Shown here: positions 1-30,200 of the stretch, one piece after another | Numbering within the stretch: the first letter of the stretch is position 1 | How the letters are laid out: each line of letters starts with the position of its first letter | Assembly: GCA_964234715.1 (NCBI GenBank) | Contig: OZ174275.1 | DNA length: 64,000 bases | Source of the DNA: Podarcis melisellensis | Taxonomy: Eukaryota | Reading direction: 5' to 3' (one strand) | Translations under genes and position numbers: made by a program | The notes under the pieces: generated by a model | Seen by the model: only the letters and a program-made list of their open reading frames with translations | What the model was told of the DNA's origin: nothing | The model's database searches: none

Positions 1-601
1 TCTTACTTCACTAATCTCTCTCACTTATTGGACCTGTTGGGCAACCGCATTTCTCCAAATGAGCTCTGTTAAGTGTTATTTCCAAACAGTCATATACCTG
101 GTGCTCTGTACTCTTGCAGGTGGCTAACATTCTTGTCAATTTTTACTTCTACACCAGGGAGAGGAAATTATTTTCAGCCAGGGAGCTGTCTTCCTTTCTA
201 TTCAACCTTCCAGGGGCCACATAGGAATTTTATTGTTTGTATAGCAGGCTAGTTTCACACCCTTCTTCATTTAGGCAAAAAGTATTAACAGAGTGAAACA
301 ACAGATATATTCAACCCGTGTCTTTGCTTCCCCGTTACACAATAGGTAGTACATTTAGTTGTGTTTAGAAATACCAGCTTAGGTTCTAACTAAGAATCCT
401 CTGGGAGGAGCATGCTGTGAGTGGAATTTTACTAATGAGATGTTCTTGCCTGTGTAAGGAGGTGGGAGGCTGCATTTTTTTCCCAGTCTTTGTCTCTGCC
501 TGCCCCCCGGCAGCCCCTTTGCCCATCAGATCTGGAGGGTTGAGAGACCCAGAAGGCTCTGCTTGGGTCAACCATTTAATTACATGCCTCTCTTTCCTCA
601 G

Positions 602-1818
602 GAGGTGTACCAACCTGACACACAGACACTGCAGCACAGAGAACAACTGCGCCTGATCTATCAGAAGCAGCAGGAGAAAGGAGGCATCATTGACCCTGAA
701 GCAGAAAGAAATCGCTACTTCATCAGCCTACAAAAGGTTAGTGCAGGGAGCAGGAGTACAAAGAGGATAACTGTCATAGGGAAAGAATGAAACAATGGAG
801 GTAGCAAACTTTACTTGCTGAGACATCCTGTCTTGTAGCAAAAGAGAGAGCTTTAATATTTGCATCCTAGGCAATTCTTTTAAAGTGCTGATGACACTTG
901 TTGCTGGCAAGTTTGCAAGTTACTATAGGGAAAGATTTAAGCAGCAAAGGCTGGGGAAGACAGATGGGGTGACATCAATATATTAATTCCTGTGGGATCT
1001 TTGCCACTCAGACTGAGAATCAAGCCTGCTGGGTTTATGCATTTTCTGCCCTTCATTTTGGTTTCTATCATTTTTAGCCCCCAGATACCACTGAACATGA
1101 ACAAGTAGCCATCTCAGAAAATGTTCTGGATACTGACAAGGAACTGAGGCCATCCGTAGGCTCAGAACATACCCAAGGAACTGCAGAGGCTGCTGTTCCA
1201 GTGAGGAATGAACCTGAAAAACCAGAGAGACCGCCTGTCCCTTTGCATTTCCATAGCAAGAGAGAGAGGACTCGAGAGGAGAAACCATCTATACAAGGCC
1301 CTGGCTGGCAGCTGCGCTACAAGTCACTGGAGACACCAGCAGAAACTCATTGTCTTCTCACTGTTGAGGGGAAATCCAGAACCTTCAGTAGAAGACCCAA
1401 CTGGAGAAAGGAGAGGGGACAGCGAAGCTGTGGGAGGTACAATCAAGACTTCTCAAAATCTTGCAGCAGAGACCAAGTGTCTTCACTGGTGGAGAAAAAA
1501 GAGCTGTGCACCAGAGGAATCTCACCAACCAAAGAGGGAATGTATTTGAGAGAGGAGAAAAATGTTGTGGGGAAATGGACGCAGGAGCAGAAAAGTCAAG
1601 CCCATGACAGTGAGGAAGTAAACTTGGAGGTTAGCCATAATGAGCTCAGGGGGTCGGCCAAGTGGCAGGGTCGCCGTGGGATGCAGGATTGTAGGCAGTG
1701 GGAAAAGACCAAGGGCAGAGAACATGGATCTTATATTAAAGTGCCAAGAGGCCGAGGACGCACCACATTGAACTCAAGGAGAGAGCTGCAGAGCCAAGAG
1801 ACTGAGGATGGCTCCTAG
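602..1818 (+). CDS. RNF25: E3 ubiquitin ligase RNF25 (AO7), 3' part only: last two coding exons 602-736 and 1078-1818
   Basis: Exon 602-736 (cag|...|gt) encodes EVYQPD...QKQQEKGGIIDPEAERNRYFISLQK, matching the RNF25 GGIIDxEAERNRYFISLQ motif. The last exon starts after tttttag at 1077, is in frame, and ends WQG..DC..WE..KGR...PRGRG...EDGS* like human RNF25. Synteny with BCS1L/ZNF142/PLCD4 agrees. Confidence 0.93.
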
Positions 1819-2028
1819 CAGGCAGGAGTTGAGGCTTGAGGGGCTTTTTCTAGGGGTGAACACTGGTGATTTTGTTGTGCTGTCAACCATTGGCCTGGAT
1901 TGTAAGGAAAAGCAGATCTGTCTTGAAATTCTCCTCTCAGCCATGGGCAGTTTATGTCTTGCAGAGTAGGGGTATATTGTCCTCAGAGATCAGAATTACT
2001 GTCTGTGGACTGTAGTAAATAACTGAAT

Positions 2029-2034
2029 AATAAA
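2029..2034 (+). terminator. Probable RNF25 polyadenylation signal (AATAAA)
   Basis: AATAAA about 210 nt after the RNF25 stop codon. Confidence 0.55.
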
Positions 2035-3890
2035 TGGTAGCCAAATGCTATTGCCCATGGGTAAACTGTAGGATCTTACACTGAATCAGCGCTGTGTAGA
2101 GGACTGTTTGAGGCTGAATCACTGAACTAAAAGCCAAGCTTGAAAAATAACTATTAAGTAACCCTGTTCTAAAATAGGTGCTAAAAATAGAAGGACCATA
2201 AGGGAGTACAGGTCTCCTTGTTTACTGTCCAGAACTATGGAGAGGACTTGCCATTAATAGTGTCACTATTTTTAGACATGCCTTATTGATGGTATTGGTA
2301 CATGTGAAAAGAGTGGACTTTAATCAACATTGAATTGGCGGCTGTTGACCACAGAGGGTGCTTTAAGCCCCCCAAATGTGGCCAGACTGAATGTTGGGGT
2401 CTCCCACTGCCTCATTGTAATTGGCTAATGTTCAGTAGTGATTGACCTTGAAGTGCAAACATCAAACATGCCTATTCTAAAGGGCCTTTAAATTATAAGA
2501 AGTCCAACTCCTCACTCACCCGGTAGTTGGATTTGGAGCTAGTATTGGCATCAAAGGTTTCAGCTCCAGGTACACCAAGGCTGTTGTCTTTGCCTATTTT
2601 CACAAATGTAATATCCTGCAATGGTTTACTAACTGCAATCCTGTCCAGAGTTCACGTGACTTATGTTTTAGATCTTATCATCTTTGATTCTAGCCAAATT
2701 TGGTTTTGTTGGGGTGAGAAATCTCTCGTGCTCAACTGTCTTTCTCCTCCTAACCTTATGGCTGTGTGTATGTTCATTCACCCACACACCATTCAAGAAC
2801 AGCTCTACTCTCCATTTGGGAGGGTAATACCAATGTACCTACCTATTTTTAGGCTACACAGTCCCTGTCATCTCCCTCAGCAAAATGCAGCCTTGTCTTT
2901 ATGGGTATTTCTGCTCAGAGGAGGAGTCTGTAGCAATATGGAGTACATGTGGCCACTATGCAAACATTTTGAGCAGACTTTCCTCCACTTGTATTTCTAT
3001 TTTTTCACATATTTATGGCCTTCCTCCCCCCACAACAAATTTTACCCTAGGGTGTGTGAAAGTTCCCAAGCTGCTTAGATTCCTTATATGACTGCAAAAT
3101 GTCCCCCACCCCTCCCCAAGTGAAGCTTTGCCAGACTTCATAATTTTCCTTTTCTGCTTAGCCACAGTAACATTGTAGATGTGTGACAACTTTACAGAGC
3201 ACAGTGGCCAAAATGACCTTACAATAGAAATGTGACTGATTTTAAACCAGTTCATGCTAGAGGCTAAAGGATGTCATTACTCATTTGCATGCATGCACAT
3301 ATACCAGTTTGAGCAGTTCTGCCTATTAAAAGGATTGATGTGAGATTGATTTACCTCCCTGCACTGTGGTGAGGTGTAATTTGTGGTGATGTGATGCAAA
3401 ACAGGAGTATTAAAAGCAATTTGAGTAAACCAATCTATGACTTTTTCATGGATAAAGAACATAGCTGCTGCTGTGCTGCATGTGATGAGACCATTCAACA
3501 ATATTACCTCCCTGCCTCTTTTTAGATGGTTTCTAACCTATGACCCAAGTAGTTTAAGACTTCTTAGCTAAAATGAAGTACTTTTTGATTATAAATGAAA
3601 AACAATCGGGTTCTAATTTGGACATCTTTCTGTTGGATTCACATTTTCTTTTTCTTTTCTTTTTTTGTAAACTATTCTTCTAAGGAGAAAGGCTGCTTCA
3701 TTTTGCACCACTTGAAACTTCTGAACAATAATGAATGGAGCCTACATAGAATACAAAACATGGGTAACACAATATCTAGATCCTGATTGGCTTTTCTGGA
3801 CAGGGTTATAATACAGACATAGGTCCAGGTCCAGGAATACCTAAAAGCTATACATCTTAGGAACTTGGGTCATAAAAACTGACCTAAAGG

Positions 3891-3969
3891 CACTTTGCTA
3901 ATTGGTGAGCAAAGTGCATATAGCTAATTGCTGACACTTTGCTAATTGGTGAGCAAAGTGCATATAGCT
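3891..3969. repeat. Direct duplication of a 35-bp unit, each copy containing a hairpin
   Basis: cactttgctaattggtgagcaaagtgcatatagct occurs at 3891-3925 and 3935-3969. Each copy has the inverted repeat cactttgct/agcaaagtg around an 8-nt loop. Confidence 0.9.
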
Positions 3970-4374
3970 CCTGTAGTGTGCATTAGGTAAAAAAAGAAAG
4001 AGAAGGTAAGAGCTGGATGACAGGCTACTTTATTAGAGTACACAAACTGTTCATTTGAGTTTGGATGGATTATTTCAGATTACCTGTTAAACTAAGCAGT
4101 CTTCCTGATTTGCTTGAACCAAACATATGCAGATATACAATGTCTGACTCTGTCCTATTGAGCAGCCATCTTGATCTGAAGGGAGGTTATACAATGATGA
4201 ACACTCATCCTGATGTGTGGAGGTTATATATATTTCCATCTATATATTTTTCTGTCTTTTATACTACACTTTTTCATGCAGTTCCCCAATTGCAAAGAGT
4301 CTGGTTTTTAAAAGTGGATTTTGTTACAGCAAAGCACTTATTCCACTTGAATTGTATAGACTTATTTTTCTGAT

Positions 4375-4718
4375 TGTGGGACGCGGGTGGCGCTGTGGGT
4401 TAAACCACAGAGCCTAGGACTTGCCAATCAGAAGGTCGGCGGTTCGAATCCCCGCGACAGGGTGAGCTCCCATTGCTCGGTCCCTGCTCCTGCCAACCTA
4501 GCAGTTGAAAGCACGTCAAAGTGCAAGTAGATAAATAGGTACTGCTCTGGTGGGAAGGTAAACGGTGTTTCCTTGCACCGCTCTGGTTTGCCAGAAGCAG
4601 CTTAGTCATGACCTGGAAGCTATACGCTGGCTCCCTCGGCCAATAAAGCGAGATGAGCACCGCAACCCCAGAGTCGGTCACGACTGGATCAAATGGTCAG
4701 GGGTCTCTTTACCTTTAC
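4375..4718 (+). mobile_element. Full-length Sauria SINE (Squam1-type)
   Basis: tRNA-like head gggacgcgggtggcgctgtgggttaaacc...ggttcgaatccc, conserved body, (ACCTTT)n tail, and a 12-bp TSD tatttttctgat at 4363-4374 and 4719-4730. Confidence 0.92.
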
Positions 4719-5781: not shown

Positions 5782-6775
5782 ACTCCTGTCTTCCACTGCC
5801 TAAACTCGACACAAGTATTTCCAAGGTGGGAAGAGTGAGTGTGTACATTGATGTTTGGATGATGGGCACCATTTTGAATGAAAATAGTGAACCAAGACAT
5901 TATTTTGGTGTTACTTTGCCCATTTTTGGCACAGGCTCAGTCATCTGTCGAGATCATAACGAAACATTGCACAAGGGTTCCCAAGATGGGGGCAGCAATC
6001 TTTGGCAATGTTTGGATGCTGGATGCCAAGCCTGTGCAGAGCTTGTCTTGAGACCCATGGCAGAAGTCCCCTGTTGACTGGGAGGAATGGGGTATTATTG
6101 GCATGACAGTCCAGCAAACCCCTGCCCCGTCCCCCAGCTGGCTTAGCCCTCTGAGGCCCGGGGCAGGTATGCCTGGCTCCCCCCACTCTACAAAGGCTTC
6201 CTGGTGACCATCTTGAATCATGATGGCAGACCAAAACATGACTTTGGCATGACTTCACCCAATTTTTGGTGTGACATGTCTAAACTCACAAATTACACTA
6301 TCTGTTTAAAAATGACAACAACAACAGGTTCCTAAAAATTCCCAGGCAGTGCCAGGCACCCCCTGCTAATAAAAGTGGGGGAACCATCTTAGTGATATTT
6401 TATATTAAATCCTGATGGGATTCTGATGCTGATGTACTGGGGATGCTGTGAAAATTATTCTGTGCATGAAATGAGGAACACTTACCGGTACCTGTGATTC
6501 CTGCATAGCAGGGGTGGAATAAATGAGCTTTGGAATCCCTTCCGAGTCTACAATTCTACGATCCCACAATAAACACCCATCTGGAAGCACCCCAAAAACC
6601 CAAGACGTACGAGAAAACAAATGATTATTTCCCTTTGGCTTTGACACATCAAGCAGGGTTTGAAATGCAATAATTCCTACTTGGAAATAATTTATACAGT
6701 GGTATAAAGAGGCATGACATGGGTCTGGAGATTCTTGCATTTCATTCAATATTGTGAAACAATGTTTTTGTTCAG

Positions 6776-6811
6776 GAATCACATGAGACGCAACCAGAAC
6801 TTAGTACTAAA
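6776..6811 (+). CDS. Candidate 36-nt phase 0-0 micro-exon of the olfactomedin-like gene (ESHETQPELSTK)
   Basis: tgtttttgttcag acceptor and aaa|gtgagt donor. The frame is open and phase-compatible with the 7604 exon. No homology support. Confidence 0.4.
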
Positions 6812-7110
6812 GTGAGTTACTTAAGCTGCATACAGTATATACCTTTAAAGCATATTCTGCTTCTGGGCACTGTCCTTTACTCCTTGCAGAGTTACGATTC
6901 CCAGCAACCCTTAAAAAACTGCAGTATCTAGAATTCTTTGACGGAAAGAATGTGCTTTGAATATAAAAGTGTAGTGGATATACTCCAGTGGGAAGGGAAG
7001 GGCAGGAGAGTAGAGTGTGAAGGGATCATGGTTTAGCACCAGCAAGCGTAAATTGAAAGGAGTGGATTGAGGCTGTAGGAGAGCAATCAGCTCATAGGCC
7101 AAACAAACTA

Positions 7111-7351
7111 CAGTGGTACCTCAGGTTAAGTATTTAATTCATTCCGGAGGTCCATACTTAACCTGAAACTGTTCTTAACCTGAAACACCACTTTAGCTAA
7201 CGGGGCCTCCCGCTGCTGCCGCGCCGCCGGAGCACGATTCTGTTCTCATCCTGAAGCAAAGTTCTTAACCTGAAGCACTATTTCTGGGTTAGCGGAGTCT
7301 GTAACCTGAAGTGTTTGCAACCTGAAGCGTATGTAACCCGAGGTACCATTG
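7111..7351. mobile_element. Tc1/mariner-pogo (Tigger-like) MITE
   Basis: TIRs cagtggtacctc...gaggtaccattg flanked by TA on both sides, with internal aacctgaa repeats. Confidence 0.85.
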
Positions 7352-9455
7352 TAGAAGCTTTATTCTTTCAAATGGTAACTACCTAGACTCAGTACAATCT
7401 GTTGGAAGAGACTTTGCCCAAAAAACACGATGTAGAAGGCTCAGTCTAGTGCTGAATGGGGAGCATTTGCTGGCTAAAGGATGTGGTGGGGAGGTTGCTG
7501 TTCTCAGGAAGCTATCCTGACCTTAGCTGACTATCAGGTTATGAGAAAGGGCTAAATCAAGCGATGAAGCATCCCATTTGCCTTTCTGCATCCATCATCC
7601 CAGGTTGCTGCAGATCAGATCATCTTCCACGATGGACCAATAGCAAGTGATGACGAAAACTATAAATGTATCTGCAGCATAGAGCTCCCCGACACTACTT
7701 TTCCTTCACATCTGATGATTATCCTGGAAAACGCTTATAAGAACCTGAGTACTATTTATGAAGAAGAAGTGAGCAAGGTAAGGGGGCACACTTCGGCACA
7801 TAGACAGCATGCCAAATATTTATTCCCTGCCTTGAATCACTAATGCTGTCTAGTTCTGACTGTTTCCAGCAGCTGAACAATATAACACAACACAATCAGT
7901 GACTACAGTATCATATGAGCACTGATCCAGAGCATATTTTCTACAGCGTTTATATTTGCTTACATGTAAGATTGGCTTGCTAAGAAATTGAACTGCCTCC
8001 TTCTCATATGAATTATTACAAGTCCGGCTGATGAAGAATTGATCAAGATTGGCTGATGAAGCATTGAATGAAACAGATTGGTTATCCGGAAACTCTGTTC
8101 TGGAGATATTTGATGACAGATTATGTATATATCAAACTTTTGAATTATTCTACCGCGACTGGTGAAGAAGATTTAGAGACTTTGGTTGTAATTTCTGATC
8201 ATTTGTATTAGTCTATAAATAGTGTTTAGTGCCATTGTTATTGGCCATCATCCTGTGTTATGTTGTTCAGCTTGTCTATATTGCAACACAGGGGTCTGTT
8301 TACGGATTACTGTTTCCAGCAGCTGGCAACACTACACAGGGGAATGGTACTGGCGGGGGGCGGGGGCGTGTGTGTGACAGAATGTGGCTCACAGATCTTT
8401 CAAGGCATGTTAACCCTTCCTCCAAAGCACTGTTATTGGATAGCCCTGGTAAAATAGTCCACCACCACCCACTATAAACTAAATTTGTCAGTCACAGAAG
8501 TGCTCCGAGTTCTCCCGTCTCCACAGCCCAATGTTTGTGAAAGTGCAAAGTTGAAGTCTACTCATTGTCTGGATACACCTTCAAAACTGAGTGATAAAAT
8601 AATGGTTGTTCCAGAGAAAAGGACAAGCATGGAAGCAACAATTGTAATGAAATGGTTGTTCATGATTTGTGGAAAGATGTTTTCAGTATCCTGCTAAGTG
8701 TGTGTCCTGCAAATTTCTCTAGGCTATGAAACTCCAGACAGACTTGGCATCATTTAATGGTACCTTGGAGAAATTAACCGCAACAGTGCGTCTGGTTGAG
8801 ATGGAAGGTATCAAGGATGAAGAAACTTATCAAGACCTCCTAGAAAAAATTAATCATACGAAGCGATGGGCTCGGGATCTGACTAATGCTCTAAGTGCAA
8901 CTGGTGTGGGCATTACATGTTTAACCGAACAGGTAGGTACAAAATGTTTGGGAGCACAGCAGTTTGAATTGTGCTTGCACATTGTACTGAATACACCAAA
9001 GGTGGTGCTCCTGTTTGAGAGGATTCAAACCTGCTTTAGAAAGGGCATTTGGGGGACTGTTTGGGGCTCTTCAAGGAAACTTTAAAAATATTTCTGTGCA
9101 ATGCTGAGTCCTCCATGGCTAGAGAGCTGCTTCAGGGAGCAGGAAAACATGGGATGAGAATTTTGCCTATTTTAATGCTTACCACTAGCATAAAGAGGTT
9201 ATTCCTTCCTTACCTCTCCTCGTTATTTTTTTTTAAAAAACAGACACTTTCAACATTCCATGGCTCATGGACCTACTGTAATTAAGAATGTTGTGAGCAA
9301 AGGCAAAAACCTCTGCTCCGAGGCATGTAAGATGGAGCCAAGCATCATTTTCATCAGGGAATTGGGGACTGGTAGTCCTACTAATTTTTCCCAGCCATTC
9401 AGAAGCCTTGGAGAAGATTCAGCTATTAAGAACAATCAGTCAATGTCTCTGGGTC

Positions 9456-9517
9456 ATAGAATTATAGAGTTGGAAGGGACCGCAAAAGTCATTTAGTCCA
9501 ACTTCCTGCAATGCAGG
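9456..9517 (-). mobile_element. CR1 LINE 3' end fragment
   Basis: catagaattatagagttggaagggacc...tagtccaac...gcaatgcagga is the reverse complement of a CR1 3' terminus with the (ATTCTATG)-like tail. Confidence 0.6.
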
Positions 9518-9835
9518 ATCTACTACCACAACACACAGGGAGACGCTGCAGTAGAAAATTGCTTGGGGCTGTTCAATTAAACATGTGCTAATATGTTTCA
9601 GGTCTCCAATGTCTCCAGTATTGTGTGGGAACTAGAAAAGTTTGACGAGAACAATGTGTTGTTGACACATAGGGAAATAGCCACTCTCAAGAAACAACTG
9701 GCCGATTGCGAAGACTCTGTTACAAATCCCAATTCTGGCGTCTCTCCCTCTGGAAACGGGACTCCAGAGTTTGGTGAGTCCTACCGTGTGATTGTGGGCT
9801 GGAACCTCTCCTTACATTGGTTTGTCTATAAGCTA

Positions 9836-9878
9836 CATTATCATCACCATCATTATCATCACCATTATCACCGTCACC
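9836..9878. repeat. Imperfect (CAT/CAC)n microsatellite
   Basis: cattatcatcaccatcattatcatcaccattatcaccgtcacc. Confidence 0.85.
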
Positions 9879-12328
9879 AGAATTAATATTTGTTGCTTTT
9901 TTCATAAAAGTGACGGAAAGCAGCTTGCGCTGTAAAAACCACCATTAAAAACAAATCTAAGAAAAAGAATAACATCACGGCATAAAATGCTCATTGTATA
10001 TAAAAGAGCAGATCCAAGTCAATCTGCCCCACTAAAAATGTGAGTGGAAGAAGACACCCCAAACATAGTTAAGTACTCTCCCAAATGAAGGGCCAAAAGC
10101 CTAGGAGAATAAAAAAAATGTTTTTGCCTGGGACCTAAAAGCAGATAACGCAACCAGGCATGCCTCCCTAGGGAAAGCACTCTACAAACAGGGAGCCACC
10201 ATTGAGAAGGCTTGCTTCAGTCTGGTCACCCCACAAACTTAACCCAGCTTCTTCTCACAACTAGCACATCCTCAGCGAGCTATTTGAGGCACCACCTGAC
10301 CCAGGAAAATTTTGCCGTCTTTTTAGCTTTGAGCTCTTTCACTAGATCAGTTCTCAGCCTGTACCAGTAGAGGTCAGGGTAAAAGGAATTTCCTAATAAT
10401 TACTGGATTACCTCCCACTTAATAGTTCTTTATATTATAAAAAGGCCTGCAGAGCCCTTCTGGTGCCACAGAGTCCCCCCGCCATTTGACATTAGACTTG
10501 AAAGAAGCATTCTGTTGCACTTACTAATAGAATGTAGCATGTGCTTGTGCTTAGTGCTCACAGCAGTTCTCAGGTTTGCAAATGATCCCAAAAGGGATGA
10601 TGACCACTTGCTTTAGTGAGAATTTTGGAAGGCAAACATGTAATGAACAGCTGATCAATGACAGTACAGAGGAGGAATTGGGAAGCATTATGCAGAGAAA
10701 ACACAGCAGGGCAGAGGAGTCTGGGTTGGGGGCCTGACCCGTTTTCTAAATGCAGTGGGATAAAACTTGGCAGAGCTTTTGAAACAAGCAGAATGCCTAA
10801 CATGGTCACAGAAAACAAAGATGATTTAGTTACTTATCTTGTAAAATTTATGCACCTCTTGATTGTTAAAAAAACACACAAACAACCTCAGAGCAGTTTG
10901 AAGGCGGAGAAAAACTTGTCAAGAGGAGCCACAAACAAAAGTAATTCCCTTTCTATTCCCTGGCAGGTAACTGCGACAACAAGGTGTTGATAAACGTTAG
11001 AAAGCCACTTATAGTGAAACTCAACTGGCGAGGTTTAAGCTACAAATTCGGAGCTCGGGGAAAGGACTTTGCTGTTGGAAACAAGAATCCTGACGCATAC
11101 TGGGTTGTCCCTCTCAACACAGACGAGCGTTTGTTGGAAACCTACCGCATCTACAACTCCTATTCCGACCTGCTGCTCTACAAAAACCAAATAGAGAAAA
11201 GCCTTTCTCAATTTGTTGGGTTCACCTGGAACTACACTAACTGTGGGCAGGGAAGCGGAACTATTTTGTACAACGGCAGCTTCTATTACAACTGCTACAA
11301 CTCCAGGAACCTGTGCAGGCTGGATGTGGCAACCAGTAAGGTCCACCGCAAGGCGGAATCAATTGGCAGGAATCAATTGGCAAGACTTTTGATTTCTCCG
11401 GGGATGAGAATGGACTGTGGCTCATTTACTCCATGGAAAAAAACAAGGGGAAAATAATGATTGGGCAGCTGGATCCCAATACTCTGACAATAGTCAAGTC
11501 ATGGCAAACCTCACTGTACAAGCCTAAGGCAACCAGCACCTTCATGATCTGTGGGGGTGATGTATGCCTTGATGCGGGTGACTGAACACAACGAGAAGAT
11601 CTTTTACAAATATGACACTAACACAGCCATAGAAGGCTCTATGGACATCATCCTGGAAAAGCTCACAGGCACACCGCAAAGCATAAGCTACAACCCCAAT
11701 GACCACAAGCTATACATGTACAATGATGGCTACCTGGTCAGTTATGATGTGATATTCCGACGCGTACCCCTGTTCCAAAAGAGGAGCGTGCTCAGTGTGA
11801 AAGAGCCAGATACTTTTGCGATGGTCGATAAAAACCACTTCAGCTCACGAGACTTTGCCATTGCCTGAAAGAGAAACAAGGCCAGGCACGCACAACATTT
11901 ACCTATTGGCAAATACATATTTTAAATGGTAAAAGTCTTGATTGTAAGGCCAGCAGATAGATTCTATCTTTAAAGGGTATAATTAAACAAGCCCTTTTCT
12001 TCACAGTGCAGTCAAGTGTCTACCTGTGTGAAGAGAACATGTCACAGGGTTGGCTGCTCTCACCATTGAACCTCCACTGCCTTTCCCTCGCACCAAATGA
12101 TTCTGGCAGTAACAGGATTAGGGCTTTGGTGTGGAATCTGCTATAGATCGTGCCACTGAGTAACTAGGAGTTCATAAACAGCAGACATACACCCTGAAAT
12201 CACCTTGCGTGTGTTGTGTTTGTGTGTGTCTGTCCCCTCCGGCTAGTTATGACACCTTTTGGGCCTCTCCTCAGGTGTTAACATTTGCCATCTGGAGGAC
12301 ATAAGTTCCACAACACCTGAGCTTCACA

Positions 12329-12531: not shown

Positions 12532-14196
12532 TCAGGATATAAGAGCTTGCACGTTCTTAAGGGCTGCGTCCGGATCCGCCTTGTGTAGCATGAAGTGGCC
12601 TTGGACTTGCGCGGCACTGATCCGATCAGAGGCAGACACGGCCTGTTTGGCAAACTCCTCGGCCGCAGCTGCTGGCTGGTCTGGGTAGAACCTCTGGAAC
12701 ATGCGCCCGAGCTGCCACTCTGAGCAGTACCCCACGTACTGCTTCAGGTCCACCCGGCCAGGGCGAACTAGGGCTGGATCGAGCCTGCAGGGAAAGAGGA
12801 GAAGAAAAATGAGGCTCAGCAAATGCTCAGGTGGGAAATATGGTTCTCTATGCTCCTCTCACTTGGGGTATCATCTCCTTGTTCTCTCTCCAACCCCAAG
12901 AAGATACAGGGCTAGGGGAATCTGCTCTCCCCTTTATTTTTTTGAGCTACTCTCTAAAAGAATATAGAGTAACAGTGCCTTGTAATTTAACTACACCCAC
13001 GTCTTGCTGCACTCACCCATCATGCTCCTCTTTCTCCATACCTGCCAAGTTACCCATCCCCTCCTACAATCTCAGAGGAGCCTGCATGGAACCAGGAACA
13101 GTAAACAAGGACAGAACCAGATCTTCAGCTTCTGTGTTAAATGCTGCAAACCAGCATGACCAAAGGAGGCAGAAGCCCATATGTATATATACCCCAGACC
13201 ACTCCCTAGCAAGCATGACCCCAGCGTTACCCAAAGCCTTACCCAGCCAGTTTTAACTGGCTGACCCTGTCTGCTGAGCATTTGCTCTTCTACCCTGCAC
13301 ACGACTCCTTCAGCACCAGGCTTACATGGCTGGCAGAGTCCTATGCTTGTGGGAGAGGATGTGTCACAGGTCTTGGAGACTACAAGAGCCCCAAGATAAG
13401 ATTCTCTTCCGTCTTCTCCTATAGTATCATCTTCTGGAACAGGAAGTGTGTCTTCATTCCTGCTGCCTTCCTCCTTTTTATACTTAAAATAGTTACCAGC
13501 TGGTCCCCAGAAAGGCAGATTTTGCCTCATAAAGACAGCACTTCCAAGGGGTGAGACACAAACTGCTCTCCTCTGTTACTCACTGCAATCTCCTTCTTGA
13601 CTGAGTTATAAGGAAGCTCATGGAGTTGCCTTGTGTGAGCTAGGGATGGACGGATCAGTTTATTTGGGGTCCATGTCCAAAGTGTTACAGGTGTTAAGTC
13701 TGCTCTGTTGCTTTTCCACTTTAAGATCTGTATTTTTTTAATTTAAAAAATCCATACAAAAATTCGTATTTAAAAATGCATTTTATTATAAATGCATATT
13801 TAAATAGTATTTATCAGGGTATGCATCTCTAAATGCATTTCCTACTAAAAAATAAATAAAAATCTTAATGCATTTTGGGAACCAAGGACTGTATTGCAAA
13901 ATTTGGAGGAGTGGGGAAGCTTAAGGATAATTGTGAATTCGTTTGGGAGGTACAAATTTGGCTAGCTTGCTTGAAAATGCAGACAAAACAAAACTCTCCT
14001 CCACCCCTAGCTTGTCTTCACCTCAAAAACACCAATGGAGACATCTTAGGCACTGTGTTACTTGAGGAATCCTTGGTCCCACCAAGGGAAGTGAACCCTT
14101 TGGATTGAAGTGGTCTACCACCAAAGGGACTCCATTTGCAGCCTTCCTCCCAGCCACTGAGAGGTGAAGTAGGCTGATTTGCTGGAATACTGGTCC

Positions 14197-14235
<39 letters not shown>

Positions 14236-17200
14236 CTGTTTCCCTGGCAAAACAACAGTCCTGCTTCTGTCTGCGTTTGGGCTACCGAGGGATTCAAAAA
14301 TCTGCCTCAGGGGATACCTAGCTTCTCCTCGTGGCATGCTTTGGCACCGAATGTGAGAGGGTTGAGTAGAATGGGTTGGGTGAGGTTATCATGGTGTTAG
14401 TGTCCTCACCACATGCCGGCTGGTGGTTTCAATGCGTCACCAGTGTAGTACTTCATGTTGTGAGGGGAAGGTGATGAAGGAATTTCTCTATGGGACTGTC
14501 AGTTGTTGCTACATCGTCTCCTTCCCCTCCCCCTTTCCCCTTCCTACTTCTGTTACAACAGTTTTGATTTAGCTGCTAGAGAAATGTAGAATCCTAAACC
14601 ACTGTAGACTCCAGCCTCTCAGCCACTACCTTCCTTGGGTGCCATTAAATGATCATTCCCAAGCAAAAGGTTATCTTCTGCAGCTAACAACCTCTCTATC
14701 TGCCCCCATTTTCTGTGCAATGCTTCTGACCTGTCCACATAATTGGTGGTCATGAATACGATCCTTGCTTCGGAGGAAGCCACACCATCCAATGCGTTGA
14801 GAAGGCCACTGAAAGTCAGGCGTCCCATGCCTTGGTATGCGCTGGGGTCTGGAGGGAAACACAGAGGCACAGAGACAGCTCAGAGGGAGACACTATAGGT
14901 ACAGTTGTGACCAAGGGCTGCCCAAATTCTGTCTAGGTTTATAGCCTTCCAGGGGAAGGGCAACAATCCCACTGTTGTGGTCTTATGTTACAGTAGTACT
15001 AGTTTTATGCTGCCTGCCTGATGTGCAGTGGTTTGCGAAATGTTCCTGACACACTGCTGTCCAAATAGATACATGAAGGGGTCAGAGAAAATCATGCCAC
15101 CTGGTGGCAAAATGCAAGTCGATAGAAAGCAGGACGATAAACAGTCAGGAGCCTATGTCAAAAGAAGGCTGGCAAAAAGAAGTGCCTCTAGGATCTCTGC
15201 TGGCGAATCTCTTCCACAATGCAAAAGATGTAAACCTGTCCCCAAGCGCCTGTCTTGTTTCAAGTCTCTCTTTGTATATGGATAACTGATTTGGAATAGG
15301 TGTCACATTAAAGCCTGCAGATAATTATTTATCATTATATTTATTCAATCTATTGGTAGCTTGCTACGTAAAAAGTATCGAAGTAACTCACAAAATTTTA
15401 AAGACATAAAGCAAAAAAAAAACTCAATAAGAAGAGAGCAATACGTTGCAATTAAAAAGAAACTGTACAAAAATCCAGAGAACAGACACAGTAAAGCAGC
15501 AGGGGGGAAAACTTGGCAACAAAGCATATCATCCAGCAAATCATCACCATCTGTCAAATACCTGAGTTAAGTTTTTACCTGGTGCCAAAAGAATTTTAAT
15601 GATGGCCCCAGGAGGACCCCACTGTGAAGAGCATTCCACAAGTGGGGAGCCCTGACTGGAACACCCTCTTCCTTGTCACCACACTCCAGACCTCCCTCAG
15701 AGTGGGCATTAGTAGGAGGATAAAAAATCGAAGGGTCTGGGTAGGTTCGTAAGGGAAGACATTTTCCAAAAGACATTGGTGTCCTGAGTCATTGACCCCT
15801 CTTTGTCAGCCACCAGGTCACCAACCCGAATCCCATTGCAAAGTGCAGCTTGGAGGAAGGAGCTACTATTCAGCTCTCATTCCCCCCACTCTGAATGAAC
15901 AATTAGCTTGGGAAAGTTGCTGCGGTGCAGCACTTAATCAGGATGCCTCCACAGAGTTACAACACAGGGGTGATGAACGCTTGGTCCCAGCTCAGTCAGA
16001 GGCAGCAGAAAAGGGCAGCCTGGAACAAAAGAGTGGGGAGGCGCCATCTGCCTGTCACTCACTTTCGGCAGCAAGATCCCGGCTGACGAAAGCAGCGTCC
16101 ACGTCCTCCAGGAGGATGATGCTCTGTTGAGGAGCTACGCTCAGGAGGTGGTTAAGACGATCGTCAGAGAGGCTGCGATCGCTCAGGCTCAGGAGACAGA
16201 TGCTGTACTGAAGTTCTCCAGCAAGGGCTGTGCTGTGATAGACAAAGGACAATGTTTCCACTGAAGAAAACTATGACAACACCTTGTGCAAAGGTGTAAG
16301 CTGTAGGGAGTGATTCCTGACCAGGAGCTACACAAGGTGCCCAGGGAGGTACCCTTAGAGACTGTATCCATGGTCAACAACTTTGAGAAAAGGGATTTGG
16401 GGGGGGGGAGGAAAGCTGAGGACATGGTACTCACATGAAACTGCTCTTTCCACAACCTGGGGGCCCGTACAGCAGGTATCCTCTCCGATAGGGGATTCCT
16501 ACAGACAAAGAGGCTAGTCAAAAGGCAGAAAACTCAGCCTATTCCAACTACTTATGAAATCTGAGCTACCATCATCACACCCGAGAATAAGAATGAGCTG
16601 ATCGATGATTCCTTGAGCTCACTCCATAGTGGCCAATTCCAGCTGCTGATAAAGAAATATATTGCACAGGGCTCTGACAGAGTACCCAATTTCCTGCCAT
16701 CCTAAAGGTTTAGGGCACCCTGAACAAAAGCACTACTTTAACCAACTTGGCAAACAGTTGATACAAAATATTGTGGCAAATGCCAGAAACTTAGTGAACG
16801 TTTGGTTTATCAGTACTTGGCTGTGCAGAGACTAGCCAGGACAGTCTCTCTCGTAGAAAGTAAGGGATAGTTCCTAATTCTCAAGGATTGGGACTATGCA
16901 GGGGCTGTTGTAGAGACTGCAATGAGGTAAGAAGAGGCTTCCCGCTGCACTCATAAGAAGAGAGAGGCATCATCACAGTTGGGAGTCCAAAGCAGGAAGA
17001 AGGCGCAAACAGTTTGGAAATGACAGGGATGCAGAAGGCAGCAGAGATGCCTTTGTGCGCAATAGCAGAGGGCATTGTGAATGATAATCTGGGCTAAATA
17101 ATGGGATACGCTGGCTCCATAAGTGGCATCCCACCTGCCTTAATTTAGCTCATAAAGGAAAAGCTCAGGTTGTGAGGGTATCTGAATGTCACTCCCTGAA

Positions 17201-18880
17201 AAGTAAACTCACCTCGATCAATGTACCACTTGGGGTTACCAGTGAACTCTTTCACATCCTGCACAATTCTCTCGGACACTCCTTTCTCAAGCACTACAGA
17301 GGTGAGCGGACGCCGACGTCGTGGGAAACCAAATGGCCGCCATTCAGCCCCCATGGCTGTGTACATCACCGTCTTTCCTTCTTGCTGCCTCAGAGCCAAT
17401 TCTTTGGCTGCAGAGAAAGGAACAAAGCTGAGGAAAGGAAACTGGTTAGAGAGCCAGTGTGGTGTAGTGGTTAAGAGTCTCGTAATCTGGGGAACCGGGT
17501 TCGCGTCTCCGCTCCTCCACATGCAGCTGCTGGGTGACCTTGGGCCAGTCATACTTCTTTGAAGACTCTCAGCCCCACTCACCTCACAGAGTGTTTGTTG
17601 TGGGGGAGGAAGGGAAAGGAGAATGTTAGCCGCTTTGAGACTCCTTCGGGTAGTGATAAAGCGGGATATCAAATCCAAACTCTTCTAACTGCACATCTGG
17701 ATACAGATGGGAAAGAGGTAGAGGGAAATCGCCTGTCTGCTAAATATAACAAAGAAGCAAGGAAGCATCACCAAAGAGAATGTGTCAATTTGGAGGATAG
17801 CCCCAGCTCTAAGTAGGGGTACTTAAGGAACTGGAGTTCTGTGAACTCTGATGCAGAGTGATATAATTTGTACCTCCTGGAATCAGGTGCAGAACAGAAC
17901 ATAACTAGCCATCAGACTTTGGCCTTCTCTAAATTTTGAAATACAGTTTTCAGTTCAAAAAATGCCCAAAGGCATGCAAAATGCATAATTTGGAATAAAA
18001 TACATTTAGAAATCCATACAATGAGCTACAATCATAGCTACTTCATAAAAATATATTTAGGTATGTATTTGAACATGATTTTTTGCATATATTTTTTTTA
18101 AATTGCAGATTAATGCAGAAACAGGATGGAATGGACTTACTAAAGAACACATGTAAAATAAACCTGGGCCCAGAAATAGACTGATCTATTCATCCCTAGT
18201 GCCAACATCATCATTAAATGTATTACCCACCCTTGCCAGCAGGCACCACTCCAAACAAGGAGAGCTATTGTACCTTCCTGCAGGATGTTGAAGAAAACTT
18301 CTCGGTTGCTACCGATTGCTGTGAAGGTGACAGATTCCCAGGGGGTGCCCGTATGCAGGTCAATCATTTGTTTCTCCCGGTTTCGTTCAATGCGGATCCA
18401 CTTCCTTTTATACCTGGAAGCAGAACAGGGAACATGTGAACAGGAACTGGTGGTGGGGAGACAACTGGATGAGCAAGCGTGCAATATTCATGACCACCAC
18501 TTCCTTATTAGCCTTGCAATACTTCTGCCCATCCCAAAGACCTTCCATGGCCTCACTTACCAAATGAAATGGTTCCCAGGGCTGGGGATAAAGTCAAACT
18601 TGGTACTGATACGGCCACTCTCATGCTGCAGGTATGAGGTCTCCACGCTCAGGTGCTGGGTGTGCTTTGCATGGTGAGAGATCCAGCTCAGCAGCCAGTG
18701 ATAACTCTTGTCCTTGCTTGGCACCTCTAGGGTGATCATACAATGCCGCCTGAAAGCCACCAAGCCAAGCTGTGCCCCTTTACGGGCCAGGGCCAAGGCT
18801 GTACCTACACCCACCAGGCCAAAGCCTGCTCCGAAGTATGGATTGTCCTTCAGGGCCGAGACAAAGTCAGAAAAGGGCAT
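12532..18880 (-). CDS. BCS1L: Mitochondrial chaperone BCS1 (AAA ATPase, complex III Rieske protein insertion), 419 aa. Exons 18880-18561, 18413-18274, 17407-17213, 16498-16435, 16232-16063, 14848-14731, 12784-12532
   Basis: Starts [26 protein letters not shown]. Contains Walker A GPPGCGKS, Walker B IILLEDVD and SRH MTTN...[12 protein letters not shown]. All introns are GT-AG. Exon lengths 320+140+195+64+170+118+253=1260 nt. Confidence 0.98.
14200..14233. repeat. (GT)n microsatellite
   Basis: About 17 GT units in the last BCS1L intron. Confidence 0.95.
17451..17686 (+). mobile_element. tRNA-derived SINE (Squam3-type), antisense inside a BCS1L intron
   Basis: A-box gtggtgtagtggttaagag, B-box-like gggttcgcgtctcc, body ctgggtgaccttgggccagtc, and tail aaatccaaactcttct. 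Confidence 0.8.
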
Positions 18881-24254: not shown

Positions 24255-27200
24255 ATGACAATGAGCACGGGAGCAGTTACAACGGAACCTGTGGGAGGAG
24301 ACAAGATGAACGCACTATGCCAGGAGCTCTTGCTACCCGGCTCAACAGATGCAGGAAATGAGAACAACCATAGCATCTCCAGTGAGAACTTAGTGGTGGG
24401 ACAAAGCTTGCTTTTAACAGAGGCTTCTGTGGTAGGAACAGAAACTGCTGGTGTTGAAATATTTGTAGAAGCCGTGACTAGCAGCATGTCCCTCAGCAAT
24501 CCTGGCAGCACTACAGGTATGTTGTGCCCTGATGGGTCTTCGTAACCATGTAAGAATGAACCACTTTGTCACTGTCATCTTTTAGTGTGAGTGGTTTCTG
24601 TCATGTAGCATTTGTATTCTAAAGGAGCATCAGAAAGAAGCCTTAGGATCTTAGGTCTGGTACAAAAGGCCAAGAGACCTGTGAAAGAGTAGTCTGGCTT
24701 TTCTGCACCTGATGCTGTTTTCTGTAATTGTAAGTTGCTTTGATACATTTTAAGTAGTCAGCAGCGAATAAATGCAAGAAAAATGAGGGTAAAGTTTGTA
24801 CATCTGTTATCTGGGAGAAGGAATATCTGCCACATTCTGTTATCTGCTCTAGGAATTGGAGAGAATGGAGATTGTGTTCTGATCGGGGTTCCAGGGTCCT
24901 TGTTATTATCAATTGTCCAGCAAGTCACCAAGATAAGCTATGACTGTGGCTAGATTTGCTTGAGGTACTGTGAGCAGCTGAGATGGAAAAGGTGCAAGGT
25001 GTATTTGCCTAATAGGAGGAGGCAGGGATTTATTTTAACTGTATCTGATGGGATATTGCTGAGCTTGCAATAGGCATGAAGCTTACTGTGGATCTGTTTG
25101 CTGCACCTTCATAAGGCTGCTTATGGGAGCTACCTTTCAATGTCATGGTGATAAATATTGGACTAATGCCGTGGAATATAAGGACCAGAGGCCTTACTAT
25201 GTTCTTTGAGGTCTACAGTTTTGCCTGCGGTGCCTCTGCCATACTCAGTACAAATGACTGAACTATCTTTAGGACTAATAAGCTAATGTCTTTATTAGGG
25301 CAAAGGGGCTGATACCGTGTGCCTCAACATCATCCTCTGCCTCCATCTCTTTTAGCAGTGCTGAGGAGCATGAGGGGTATAGGATATGGGAGATGGGAGA
25401 GTGCCTTGGAGGACATCAAGAGCATAGGATTTGCAGGGTACCATATTTACAGCAAAGTAGGGTAGGATGTTTAATGAAGGAGAAGACACCACTTACAGGG
25501 ATGTTTAGGTGGTGGCATGTGGGAAGGGGGTTAGGTGTTAAGGAGTTGGAAGCTTACAAGGGAGTGATTGGCATCAGTGATCTTGCAAAGGAATTTGAGA
25601 GGCAAGATTCATATAGGTGGTACACACTGAGACAGGATAGTAAGGGACACTTTGAAAATTAAGCAGTGGTCCTACCATTGCCCTCCTTCAAATCAAACTG
25701 GTGATCTTTTCCTGTGAAAATGTTTGGGTGTGGTTCTAAACACCTGAAGCATGGAGAGTCCCCCCCCAACCCATTTGAATTGAATCCTGTGTTCTGATAA
25801 CAGTTCTTATAGGTGACTCTCCACCTATATGCTGATGGCTGTGACAGAGCTTTGGAGAATCCTTGTCTGTAAGCTGACACAGTTTTTAGTAATTTTTGCC
25901 TTGGACGAGATTTGAACTGAGGCATGAGGAAGATTTTTTTCTACCTTATTTTCAGCTTTTTTTAAAATATCTCCTTACAGAGGTCTTGGTTAAAGTTGTG
26001 GAGCTCTATTTCTGCGAACGGTGTGGGCAGAGCTTCTCTGACCCTGGCCTGCTTTCCCAGCATCAGTGCATTGAGCTTCCCAGAGGACAACTTGCAAGCA
26101 TCCCTCAGCTCCAAGAGCTACCACTGGGCCTTACAAGCCAGAGCCTGGCTGTCTCTGGAGAGCAGTCGACAGTCTATGAGGCACAAGCGCAGGGCTTGCT
26201 GGATAGAAGCAGGCAGGACCCTGAATTCTGTACCGATCCCCTCTTGTGCCCTGTTTGTCAGGTGGAGTTTGCCTTGCCCACTGAGCTGAAGGAGCATTTC
26301 AGGGACCACCAAAAACCTACGGGTCCCCAAGTGTGCTTTGAAGAAGGCTGTCATTTCAGCTCGGAGGATCGCAAGCAACTCCGGGGGCACCTGCGGCACG
26401 TCCACCAGGTGTGCCCAGTCACCTGCACCTACCGTGGCTGCTCGCTCTTATTCCGAAGCCGAGAGGACATGGACCTTCACCGCAGAAGCCACTTCCCGTT
26501 TCACTGTAGGCACTGTGACTTCATCAGCGGCAACACCAAGCAGTTTGGGCAGCACCGACACAGCCATCTGCAGGAGGCCACACAGCAGGATGTGGAGGCA
26601 GCGCTGGAGACGGGAGCAGTCGCTGAGAGCACTGAGCACAGCTTCACTGCCATAGTGGGGAAGCGGCTCACCCATCATCTGCTTCTAACAACAGGTACTT
26701 GGGGCTGAGGAAGAGGCTAGGGTGGGCAGAAGGGGGAATGCTTGGGAGCGATGCCAGCCACCTACTTCTTAAAAACCCCACTGGATCCTAGGGGTCTCTT
26801 AACTCACTTTTGTGACAGCTTCCACTTCACTCAGAGACAACGCCATAGGCAGAGGTAAAGGGGTGAAGCTCCATTAGTCAGCCGGCTTTGTGGAATGATA
26901 TTGTTTGTGGATGTGGAAAATTATAGCATGAAAAGATGGTGGTAGATTCTGAATGGTGAACCATGGCAGGGAAAGGGATTTGAAATGGTGGGAAAGTTGG
27001 GGGAATGCAGTAGCTGAGAGCAGCTCTCCCTTTGAAAATGCCCAAAGTTTAATCCTCCTGTCTGTCAAACCATGAAAGTCTTATTTCCACTTTTTATGTG
27101 TCTTAATTTTAACCCTCTTTTCTAGTTCCTGTTCTACTTCCCTTTGCCTGGTTCTCAATATGCATTTATTTGCATGTTATCATTTGCTCATCTCAAGCCT

Positions 27201-30200
27201 TTTCTCTATAAAAAAATGGAGTCCCTGGTTTATATTTCATTTTCTTTCCAAGGAAGGGAAGAACCACTAAGCAAGGCTGAGAATTGCTTGGAAGTTCAGA
27301 GTGGTTGGGATGTGACTGAAATGGAGCCTGGCCTGGGGGCACATGTTGGTAGCAGTCATGTGCCTCCTGAGGACTCAGGACCCAAGGAAGACACAGGGGA
27401 TGAATTTCAGGAGGAGGAGGAGGAGGAGGTGGTGGTGGAGAAGGAGAGCTTTGAGAAGAAAGCATCTTCTAAAAGAACAAAGGCTCAGCTGATCAAAGGT
27501 AGAGACTTGCATTAATTTGCGAGCAGTACAGTTTCTGGCATTTCTTAGAAAAGCTTTGCCAAACAGCAAATGCACTGGCATATTACAGCATGCCCTATAT
27601 TTGAAGAGGGTCTCCCTGCCTGAACTGGTTGTTTTCTTTCCTGAGTTCAGAGGCAAACTACTTCACACATTACTTCCCACTTCTGCTTGGAAATCTATTT
27701 GTGGTGCTTTCTTTTCTTTGGAATGGGGCGGAGCATTGAATGCAATGGCTGTTCTCCAGTGGGTGCTAACTGATTCCCAATTATCCCTAAATCTCCTGAG
27801 CTACTAGAAGCTCTTAAGCATAGGGTGGGGTTTTTAGATAAATTTTATATCTGTAAAAAGAACCCTCTATTGTTATAGGCCATTGCAATAATTTTTTATT
27901 GTAGGGTAGAGAGATTGCAGTTCGGAGCAACTGTTATTGCTAGAGATGAGAGGCAGGCAAAATAGACTTCTGGAGCATGACCAAGGGCCCTTTTATTCAT
28001 AACTCTGCACTTAAGGCATGCTTCTCTCATTGCAGAAGGTGCGGTTGAGGACTCCAAATACTTGTTCAAGACCCACATGTGTCCGGAGTGCAAGCGTTGC
28101 TTCAAGAAGCGGACTCACCTGGTGGAACACCTTCACCTCCACTTCCCTGACCCCAGGCTGCAGTGCCCAAACTGCCAGAAGTTCTTCACCAGCAAGAGCA
28201 AGCTGAAGATCCACATGATGCGTGAGAACGGGGAGAAGGCCCATCGCTGCCCGCTGTGCCACTACAGCTCTGTAGAGAAGAATGCCCTCAACAGGCACAT
28301 GGCCAGCATGCATGAGGACATCTCCAACTTCTACTCGGACGTCTACTCCTGTCCTGTGTGCAAGGAGACGTTCAAGCTTAGCCATGCCCTCAAGGAGCAC
28401 CTGAAGACCCACAAGGCAGAGCCCAAGCAGCTGAGCTGCTTCCAGGCCGACTGCAGCTACTGCACCGAGGACCGCAAGGACTTCCTGCGGCATGTCAGGG
28501 AGGCGCACTACATCAAAGCGGTGGAGTGCAAGTACTATGCCTGCTCCCTGCTCTTCCCCACCGCGGAGGTCATGGAAGCGCATCGCAAGACGCACTACGC
28601 CTTCCACTGCCAGCAGTGCGACTTCATCTGCTCCAACAAGCACGTCTTCCGCAAGCATAAGAAGCAAGGCCACCCGGGGAGCGAGCAGCTCCAGTGCAGC
28701 TTCTGCCCCTTTGCCACATTCAACTCTGTGGAATTCCACGACCACGTGGGCAAGATGCACGCCAGCGAGAAGATCCACAAGTGCACCGAGTGCAACTTCG
28801 CCACGGCACACAAGAGGGTCCTCATCCGCCACATGCTGCTCCACACAGGCAAGTTTGCTTCCCTGCATGGGGACTCCTAGGGAAGCTCTGGAACATGTCA
28901 GCTTAGGTTAGACTTATTCTTCCTGTACAAAATCCTGGCCTTCTGGGGCCAGGTTCTGCCCCACACCTCGTGTTGAAAGACCTAGATTCTGTACTGGAAA
29001 GGGATTGAGATTCTTTAGTAAAATTTAGGCATATTTGCCAGATTTCCGAACTTTAGTCTGATAACAGAATTTCAGTTCTGGTTATAGAGTTCAACAGTCT
29101 TCAGTAGAAAGTTAGATTCCCTGACTAGACTTTTGTTGGAGTTTGCAATTTTTGGCAGCCCATTCCCTATTTTAGTTGCAATTTCCCACCAGCCTTTCCT
29201 TTTCCCAGCTAGCAGCCTTGGATGCAGCTAGGCGAAGGCGCTTAGAGCACTGTTGCATTTACCTCCCCACCCCAACCTCCCAGCAAGCCCCTCCAGATCA
29301 GGAAGGTCTGGCAAGCAAAGGGCAGAAACGCGGAGAAGGACTTTCCAGTTTGTGGCCCTGCGTGGCGAAGGCACTTGCAGTGCCATGGTGATGCAGCGGC
29401 CAAGCAGCCCTAGTTTTTCTCCCCGCTTTGGAGTGAGAAAGAGGCAGGGATTGCTGCTTAGCCAATGGGATCATTGCCACTCACCTCTACACTTGCACTG
29501 TGGGAAGGCATGCTTGTTGCTTGTTAACGCTTACTTGAGGGCAGTGCCACACATGGTTAAAACCTGGGCGGCATCCATATGCAGTGACAGTAAAGCAATA
29601 TGCTGTGGGAAGGAAGTGCTACCATTTATTTTGGGGTTTTTTGTGGGGCCGGGCAGAGGGGCACTGCAGGCAGGACTGTCAATCTACAGCTTCCAGTTTG
29701 CTCTGTGACTTTAGGAGAGAAACCTCACAAATGCCAGCTGTGCGACTTCACTTGCCGAGACGTGAGCTACCTTTCCAAGCATATGCTGACCCACTCTGAT
29801 GACAAAAACTACATGTGCACCGAGTGTGGCTATGTGACAAAGTGGAAGCACTACCTGAATGTTCACATGCGGAAGCACACAGGAGATCTGAGGTACTGAG
29901 AGACCCCCTTCCCCTTCCCCTGGCTTGTTTCCTGTATCAGGAAGTAATCCGTATGCAGAGCTGAGACTTTTCTCCTTCCACGGTCTTGACCCACTCTTGT
30001 TTTGTGTGCAACCAGGTATCAGTGTAACCAGTGTTCCTACCGCTGCCACCGGGCCGACCAGCTGAGCAGCCACAAGCTGCGCCACCAGGGCAAGTCCTTG
30101 ATCTGCGAGGTGTGTGGCTTTGCTTGCAAGCGCAAGTATGAGCTGCAGAAGCACATGCAGGCGAAACACTCCCAGAACTACCAGTCTCCCGTCTTCCAGT

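Follow-up and report, generated by a model that had tools for sequence, protein, structure and literature searches.

What is the olfactomedin-type gene that lies between RNF25 and BCS1L in the wall lizard Podarcis melisellensis, and does it still encode a protein? The question was raised by a 64-kb stretch of contig OZ174275.1 (NCBI GenBank assembly GCA_964234715.1), in the following referred to as the window, which represents vertebrate DNA with a guanine–cytosine (GC) content of 40–57%. A first annotation (the original prediction) had proposed an additional, previously unnoticed olfactomedin gene at positions 6776–11868 of this window. Our results indicate that the locus is very probably a unitary pseudogene of a squamate gene annotated as 'olfactomedin-like'. 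The attractive reading of an 'invisible extra olfactomedin' has to be corrected: the gene has already been called in approximately 20 lizards, and it is most likely dead in the species studied here.

The four coding exons with AG/GT boundaries that had been proposed were recovered, and their boundaries appeared to be conserved in four lacertid orthologs. The P. muralis protein P0066, used for comparison below, has MRRNQNLVLNIPFAFLHPSSQVAAD as its N-terminus, and its residues 1–9 and 10–79 were mapped on the P. muralis locus L002.

7604–7777, plus strand: exon 2, encoding VAADQ...CIC-SIELPDTTFP...NLS; intact, phase 0/0; 91.5% identical to P0066
8723–8932, plus strand: exon 3, intact; encodes a helical region and the sequons NGT and NHT; 93% identical to P0066
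9602–9773, plus strand: exon 4, intact, end phase 1; encodes a helical region and the sequons NVS and NGT; 96.6% identical to P0066
10967–11868, plus strand: exon 5, OLF beta-propeller, distributed over three reading frames; the original stop is located at 11866–11868

The start of exon 3 was determined to be position 8723, which places the previously given open reading frame (ORF) start of 8726 3 nt inside the exon. In its five-exon layout and in exons 2–4 (91–97% protein identity to P. muralis), the window copy resembles the orthologs deposited in RefSeq. The translations also confirmed the predicted oligomerisation motif CICSIELPDTTFP in exon 2, the frog-like motif YYNCYNSRNLCR in exon 5, and the seven N-glycosylation sequons (NLS, NGT, NHT, NVS, NGT, NYT, and NGS). 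The latter, together with the CIC at 7667–7675, place the copy within the architecture of the OLFM4 subfamily. A CAT/CAC microsatellite located in intron 4 (9836–9879) gives rise to a spurious His-rich ORF.

However, the claim that these exons rebuild a protein did not hold, because the OLF domain is distributed over three frames, in-frame stops occur, and the exon for the signal peptide is missing. For the searches, each exon and each frame piece of exon 5 was submitted individually, and in the alignments they formed separate, unspliced rows. Three pieces of exon 5 were matched by the Pfam profile OLF (PF02191) with 58.7, 73.4, and 66.1 bits (cut-off 23.9), corresponding to profile positions 1–103 in frame 1, 124–179 in frame 3, and 179–246 in frame 1, respectively; positions 104–123 of the profile are missing from the exon 5 pieces. 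One continuous open frame through the OLF domain of ~250 residues was not found in the window copy: exon 5 is read in frame 1 to ~11354, in frame 2 for 'GINWQDF', in frame 3 for 11391–11552, and again in frame 1 from 11554. In a PDB sequence search, no match at E ≤ 0.001 was obtained for the N-terminal OLF piece, and the C-terminal piece retrieved distant myocilin and noelin OLF domains only, which confirms the fold family and nothing more.

The lesions causing these frame changes were called by alignment of the exon 5 DNA with that of P. raffonei, P. muralis, Lacerta agilis, and Zootoca vivipara, and all three of them are specific to the window.

11355–11382, plus strand: lesion 1, exact 14-nt tandem duplication (two copies of GGAATCAATTGGCA); detected by Tandem Repeats Finder and alignment
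11387–11390, plus strand: lesion 2, run of four T compared with three T in all four orthologs (+1); alignment
11553–11557, plus strand: lesion 3, run of five G compared with four G in all four orthologs (+1); alignment
11455–11460, plus strand: TAA directly followed by TGA, both stopping the frame that continues from exon 4 (frame 1); translation
11056–11058, plus strand: codon CGG (R) in the motif GAWGKD; W in 99.6% of 261 family proteins

In lesion 1, the first copy of the duplicated unit replaces 40 nt encoding VEDAVFNNWYSYS in the orthologs (net −26 nt), and the residues lost include A, N, S, and Y, which are conserved in 91–95% of the 261 family proteins. Since the lesions total −24 nt, reading returns to the original frame over the final 104 codons, with ~57 codons of exon 5 being out of frame between the lesions. 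Unlike its RefSeq orthologs, the window copy is thus characterised by three frame lesions and a net loss of 8 codons in the OLF exon. A micro-intron spanning lesion 1 (GTAAGG at ~11339) was considered and rejected, because its length of ~40 nt is too short.

Further damage was found at the 5' end of the gene. The canonical exon 1 of Zootoca comprises 39 nt (L005:10001–10039) and is preceded by a TATA-like box 50 nt upstream; the encoded protein begins with MFGLLLCLAVAYL, followed by VAADQ across the exon boundary. Exon 1 and the TATA box are conserved among Zootoca, L. agilis, and the agamid Phrynocephalus. No match to this exon was detected anywhere in the 64-kb window, in the P. muralis locus L002, or in the P. 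raffonei locus L003. Unlike the genes of Zootoca, L. agilis, and the agamids, the Podarcis copies therefore have no canonical signal-peptide exon, and the exon 1 with a cleavable signal peptide that belongs to the ortholog group was not found in the window copy. The following features were assigned to this region.

6393–6425, strand not assigned: junction of a ~2.1-kb deletion by which the canonical promoter and exon 1 were removed; Zootoca L005:8372–10447 has no counterpart in the window
6783–6811 (29 nt), plus strand: cryptic first exon; encodes MRRNQNLVL, with 2 further nt before the donor GTGAGT; used by RefSeq for P. muralis XP_077779540.1
7110–7353, strand not assigned: Podarcis-specific repeat insertion in intron 1; L. 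agilis and Zootoca do not have it, position 7109 being followed directly by 7354 in their sequences

The deletion junction of P. muralis is the same as that at 6393–6425 of the window. P. raffonei retains part of the segment L005:8372–10447 but has no counterpart of L005:8956 to ~11280; these differing breakpoints indicate two independent deletions, in each of which exon 1 was lost. The RefSeq models of Podarcis begin at exons that are non-homologous to the canonical exon 1, and XP_077779540.1 of P. muralis splices the cryptic exon to an acceptor at 7569/7570 (window numbering). The ATG closest to the originally proposed start (6776) is located at 6783 and opens this cryptic exon. Its frame is open in the window also, but without a clean hydrophobic core, and judging from its translation, the cryptic first exon does not appear to be a typical signal peptide. 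Another possible signal peptide at 5878 (MKIVNQDIILVLLCPFLAQA) was rejected as exon 1, since it has no usable donor and consists of repeat-derived sequence. With exon 1 deleted and three frame lesions in the propeller exon, the secreted OLF glycoprotein that had been proposed as the product of the window copy has to be abandoned.

Independent damage was identified in the sister species. In P. muralis, a 362-bp tRNA-like short interspersed nuclear element (SINE) with a target-site duplication of ~12 nt is located inside the OLF exon (L002:15771–16132). No GT-AG pair around the SINE yields the RefSeq protein, as deduced from a 60-nt in-script splice-pair test, and XP_077779540.1 reads through the element. 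The P. raffonei gene features a W-to-C exchange in the invariant motif DENGLW and a stop six codons early. Furthermore, a tandem paralog of 550–615 amino acids (aa) is located directly upstream of the gene in L. agilis (L004:1–3994), Zootoca (L005:1–5849), and Phrynocephalus (L001:1–1592), and is orthologous to gecko P0003 and Anolis P0161; no trace of it was found in any of the three Podarcis loci (window, P. muralis, and P. raffonei). Taken from these sequence comparisons, the decay appears to be genus-wide in Podarcis and still going on. A copy of the SINE (~77% identity) was also noticed in the window at 4378–4716 on the minus strand.

The proposed history of the locus would start from an intact five-exon gene, whose product carries a signal peptide followed by the CXC oligomerisation motif, the helical stalk, and, at its C-terminus, the OLF propeller. 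In the window copy, promoter and signal-peptide exon would have been deleted, the propeller exon would have been hit by a complex indel of −26 nt and two insertions of +1, resulting in in-frame stops, and a near-invariant Trp would have been replaced. P. muralis would have the exon-1 deletion in common with the window and, in addition, the SINE in its propeller exon. P. raffonei probably lost exon 1 through a different deletion and acquired damaging changes of its own, and the tandem sister gene of other lizards would have disappeared from all three Podarcis loci.

Several observations weigh against a pseudogene. The combined length change of the three lesions is divisible by three, an uncommon outcome of random decay, exons 2–4 and their splice sites remain intact, and the two 1-bp insertions in homopolymers could be artefacts of the assembly or of the haplotype. 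RefSeq contains full-length models in the sister species, possibly supported by transcripts, which start from a cryptic exon that is open here too. Approximate ratios of non-synonymous to synonymous substitution rates (dN/dS) amounted to 0.95 for the window branch (18 non-synonymous versus 5 synonymous changes) and, with the Podarcis branches pooled, to 1.35, i.e., not below neutral; however, a value of ~1.1 was obtained for the intact Zootoca gene as well, and the difference between Podarcis and the pooled non-Podarcis branches was not significant (Fisher p = 0.28). Relaxed constraint is therefore not specific to the broken copies and the measure adds little, so that dN/dS was dropped as a test for pseudogenisation, being non-discriminating.

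The gene might be intact in the animal, the exon 5 lesions representing assembly errors or one null haplotype, with expression starting from the cryptic exon at 6783. Two out of the three lesions are indeed +1 changes in short homopolymers, the net change (−24) is in frame, exons 2–4 are clean, and the P. muralis RefSeq model begins at the same cryptic exon. However, the replacement of 40 nt by 14 nt is not a typical sequencing error, and the adjacent 3.8 kb contain one window-specific 1-bp indel among four indel events in total, which is not above the values for the other species and hence indicates that the assembly is not indel-prone. Even if the three lesions were undone, the canonical promoter and the signal-peptide exon would still be missing, and both the W-to-R exchange at a residue conserved in 99.6% of the family and the independent disabling changes in the sister species argue against an intact gene, which we consider unlikely.

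A shortened product, either non-secreted or weakly secreted, could have taken over a new role; it would begin with the cryptic exon 1, continue through the CXC motif and the stalk, and end in a partial propeller at 11455. No stop interrupts the frame between 6783 and 11457, across exons 2–4 and into exon 5, and the splice sites of exons 2–4 are conserved, but the five-bladed propeller would be cut after ~40% of the domain and would not be expected to fold. Moreover, the N-terminus MRRNQNLVLNIPFAFLHP has no continuous hydrophobic core such as that of MFGLLLCLAVAYL in Zootoca, and the substitutions on the window branch look neutral, rendering such a product very improbable. A unitary pseudogene is thus the reading preferred here.

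To which gene the decayed copy belongs was deduced from library searches, gene order, and phylogeny. The first OLF piece matched a 511-aa protein of Phrynocephalus with 73% identity and a P. muralis fragment with 92% identity. A word search with the Phrynocephalus protein retrieved, among the best 120 matches, proteins named 'olfactomedin-like' or 'olfactomedin' from ~20 squamates, comprising agamids, iguanids, anguimorphs, an amphisbaenian, lacertids, skinks, cordylids, and geckos, followed by amphibian and shark proteins with ≤48% identity. Going by naming practice, the NCBI labels presumably indicate that, of the curated proteins, frog olfactomedin matches best. No snake, turtle, crocodilian, bird, mammal, or tuatara protein was among these 120 matches. 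Many snake genomes are annotated, and the gene may be lost in Serpentes.

RefSeq entries of this gene include XP_077779540.1 (P. muralis), XP_053231030.1 (P. raffonei), XP_034966191.1 (Zootoca vivipara), and XP_078243210.1 ('olfactomedin', Pogona vitticeps). The supposed unnoticed extra gene is therefore one for which RefSeq models exist in the RNF25-OLF-BCS1L arrangement of P. muralis and P. raffonei and which is annotated in ~20 squamates. Whether the locus might correspond to a gene already characterised across sauropsids had also been asked, and this is only half the case: its annotation is by prediction and limited to squamates, and no paper on it was found, literature searches on olfactomedin in lizards or reptiles having returned nothing on the BCS1L-linked gene. 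It represents a known, uncharacterised squamate gene, which is intact in Zootoca, agamids, anguimorphs, geckos, skinks, and Anolis.

Phylogenetic trees were calculated from 71 rows (quick tree, Shimodaira–Hasegawa-like approximate likelihood ratio test) and 49 rows (careful tree); they were unrooted or midpoint-rooted and contained neither a non-OLFM4 outgroup nor bullfrog olfactomedin. The squamate clade, consisting of the BCS1L-linked gene and its tandem sister, obtained a support of 100 in the quick tree and 100/99 in the careful tree, and the corresponding values for OLFM4 proper (rays/sharks, lungfish, amphibians, and amniotes) were 98 and 100/98. In both trees, the squamate clade falls outside OLFM4 proper, and in the quick tree, the window pieces are placed inside the group of lacertid orthologs (support 100%). 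OLFM4 (GW112/hGC-1) belongs to the same subfamily and features the same overall architecture with ~40% identity; the squamate gene represents a separate, older lineage, and OLFM4 proper has its own clade from shark to mammal. Podarcis also possesses an annotated OLFM4 (P0253), which groups with bird, turtle, crocodilian, and mammal OLFM4, and an OLFM4-like gene (P0042), both on other chromosomes. The latter, 'olfactomedin-4-like', is located between two olfactory-receptor genes (7tm_4) on another chromosome (P. raffonei L006:10001–15472) and forms a squamate-only clade with a long branch inside OLFM4 proper.

A clade of the squamate genes with amniote OLFM4 was rejected by the approximately unbiased (AU) test (delta log-likelihood 66, p = 0.0012), the group tested having been named after inspection of the first tree. 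The proposal of an intron-containing paralog other than OLFM4 is upheld by the separate Podarcis OLFM4, the tree placement, and the AU test, and the squamate 'olfactomedin-like' gene appears, on this phylogeny, to be an old paralog of OLFM4. That the locus is the OLFM4 of the species in a new position, as its common architecture and 40–45% identity to OLFM4-family proteins might suggest, deserves next to no credence given this separate OLFM4, its grouping with amniote OLFM4, and the rejection by the AU test.

The assignment to a frog-olfactomedin-like lineage was supported in outline, since the squamate clade adjoins an amphibian 'olfactomedin-like' clade, with the weak support of 85/75 in an unrooted tree; tiarin groups with another amphibian clade. 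Bullfrog olfactomedin and Xenopus tiarin resemble the gene in their N-terminal CXC motif, several N-glycosylation sequons, and the C-terminal OLF domain. Neither RNF25 nor BCS1L was found within the 10-kb flanks of four amphibian loci or of the gecko locus. Frog relatives occur in tandem OLF arrays in Dendropsophus (L010) and Spea (L011), and these arrays adjoin an SPRY/AAA_33 gene and an Ig/fn3 receptor kinase gene, not BCS1L. The product of the intact squamate gene should be secreted and N-glycosylated, forming disulfide-linked multimers via the CXC motif and the helical stalk and displaying OLF propellers in extracellular matrix or mucus, judging from its architecture and its homology to frog olfactomedin and OLFM4 (review PMC4206993); bullfrog olfactomedin is a glycoprotein of olfactory mucus (Anholt 2014, PMC4206993).

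Among amniotes, annotated members of this old non-OLFM4 lineage were found, within the matches listed, only in squamates other than snakes. The squamate 'olfactomedin-like' gene evolves fast, and its decay in wall lizards seems to have proceeded by independent deletions, a SINE insertion, and frameshifts. As a tentative proposal, in which we place somewhat less than even confidence, the RNF25-BCS1L interval of squamates may harbour a tandem pair of ancient olfactomedin paralogs that predate the shark–tetrapod split of OLFM4 and have no annotated members in birds, turtles, crocodilians, mammals, or snakes; Podarcis would be losing the whole pair, one gene being gone and the other carrying independent lesions in three species. 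If true, the genus would provide a natural knock-out series for a gene that perhaps has a role in chemosensory mucus. The comparison of Podarcis with Zootoca or Lacerta is ready for use in finding the role of the protein, and the Podarcis RefSeq models are to be flagged as reading through disabling lesions.

The surroundings of the gene agree with the order that had been described, namely RNF25 (plus strand), OLF (plus strand), and BCS1L (minus strand), as deduced from alignment with annotated genes for RNF25 and from Pfam matches on exon ORFs for BCS1L.

1201–1818, plus strand: last coding stretch of RNF25; open frame with stop at 1816–1818
12532–18880, minus strand: BCS1L, in tail-to-tail orientation to the olfactomedin gene; exon ORFs matched by Pfam BCS1_N and AAA_lid_BCS1

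Positions 1–4374 of the window aligned with the P. muralis (L002) and P. raffonei (L003) loci at 95–96%, and the annotated RWD/zf-RING gene ends at the matching position there. Annotated BCS1L genes of 419 aa are present in the orthologous lizard loci. Across RNF25, OLF, and BCS1L, the window DNA is collinear with that of P. muralis and P. raffonei (94–96% identical), and identity to the DNA of L. agilis and Zootoca reaches 90–92%. The gene tables list RNF25-OLF-BCS1L for both P. muralis and P. raffonei; for L. agilis, Zootoca, and Phrynocephalus, they list OLF-OLF-BCS1L. The window gene is thus positioned between RNF25 and BCS1L like its Podarcis orthologs, and the gene lies tail to tail with BCS1L in the other lizards checked. 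Both this position and the placement in the squamate ortholog group were found for the window locus (five lizard loci, collinear DNA, and tree). In human, RNF25 and BCS1L are direct neighbours.

Beyond BCS1L and head to head with it, a multi-C2H2 zinc-finger gene was noticed at 25896–30500 on the plus strand, where we would presume ZNF142 to be located. The part of the window around this zinc-finger gene (28–34 kb) is GC-rich, with values of 53–57%.

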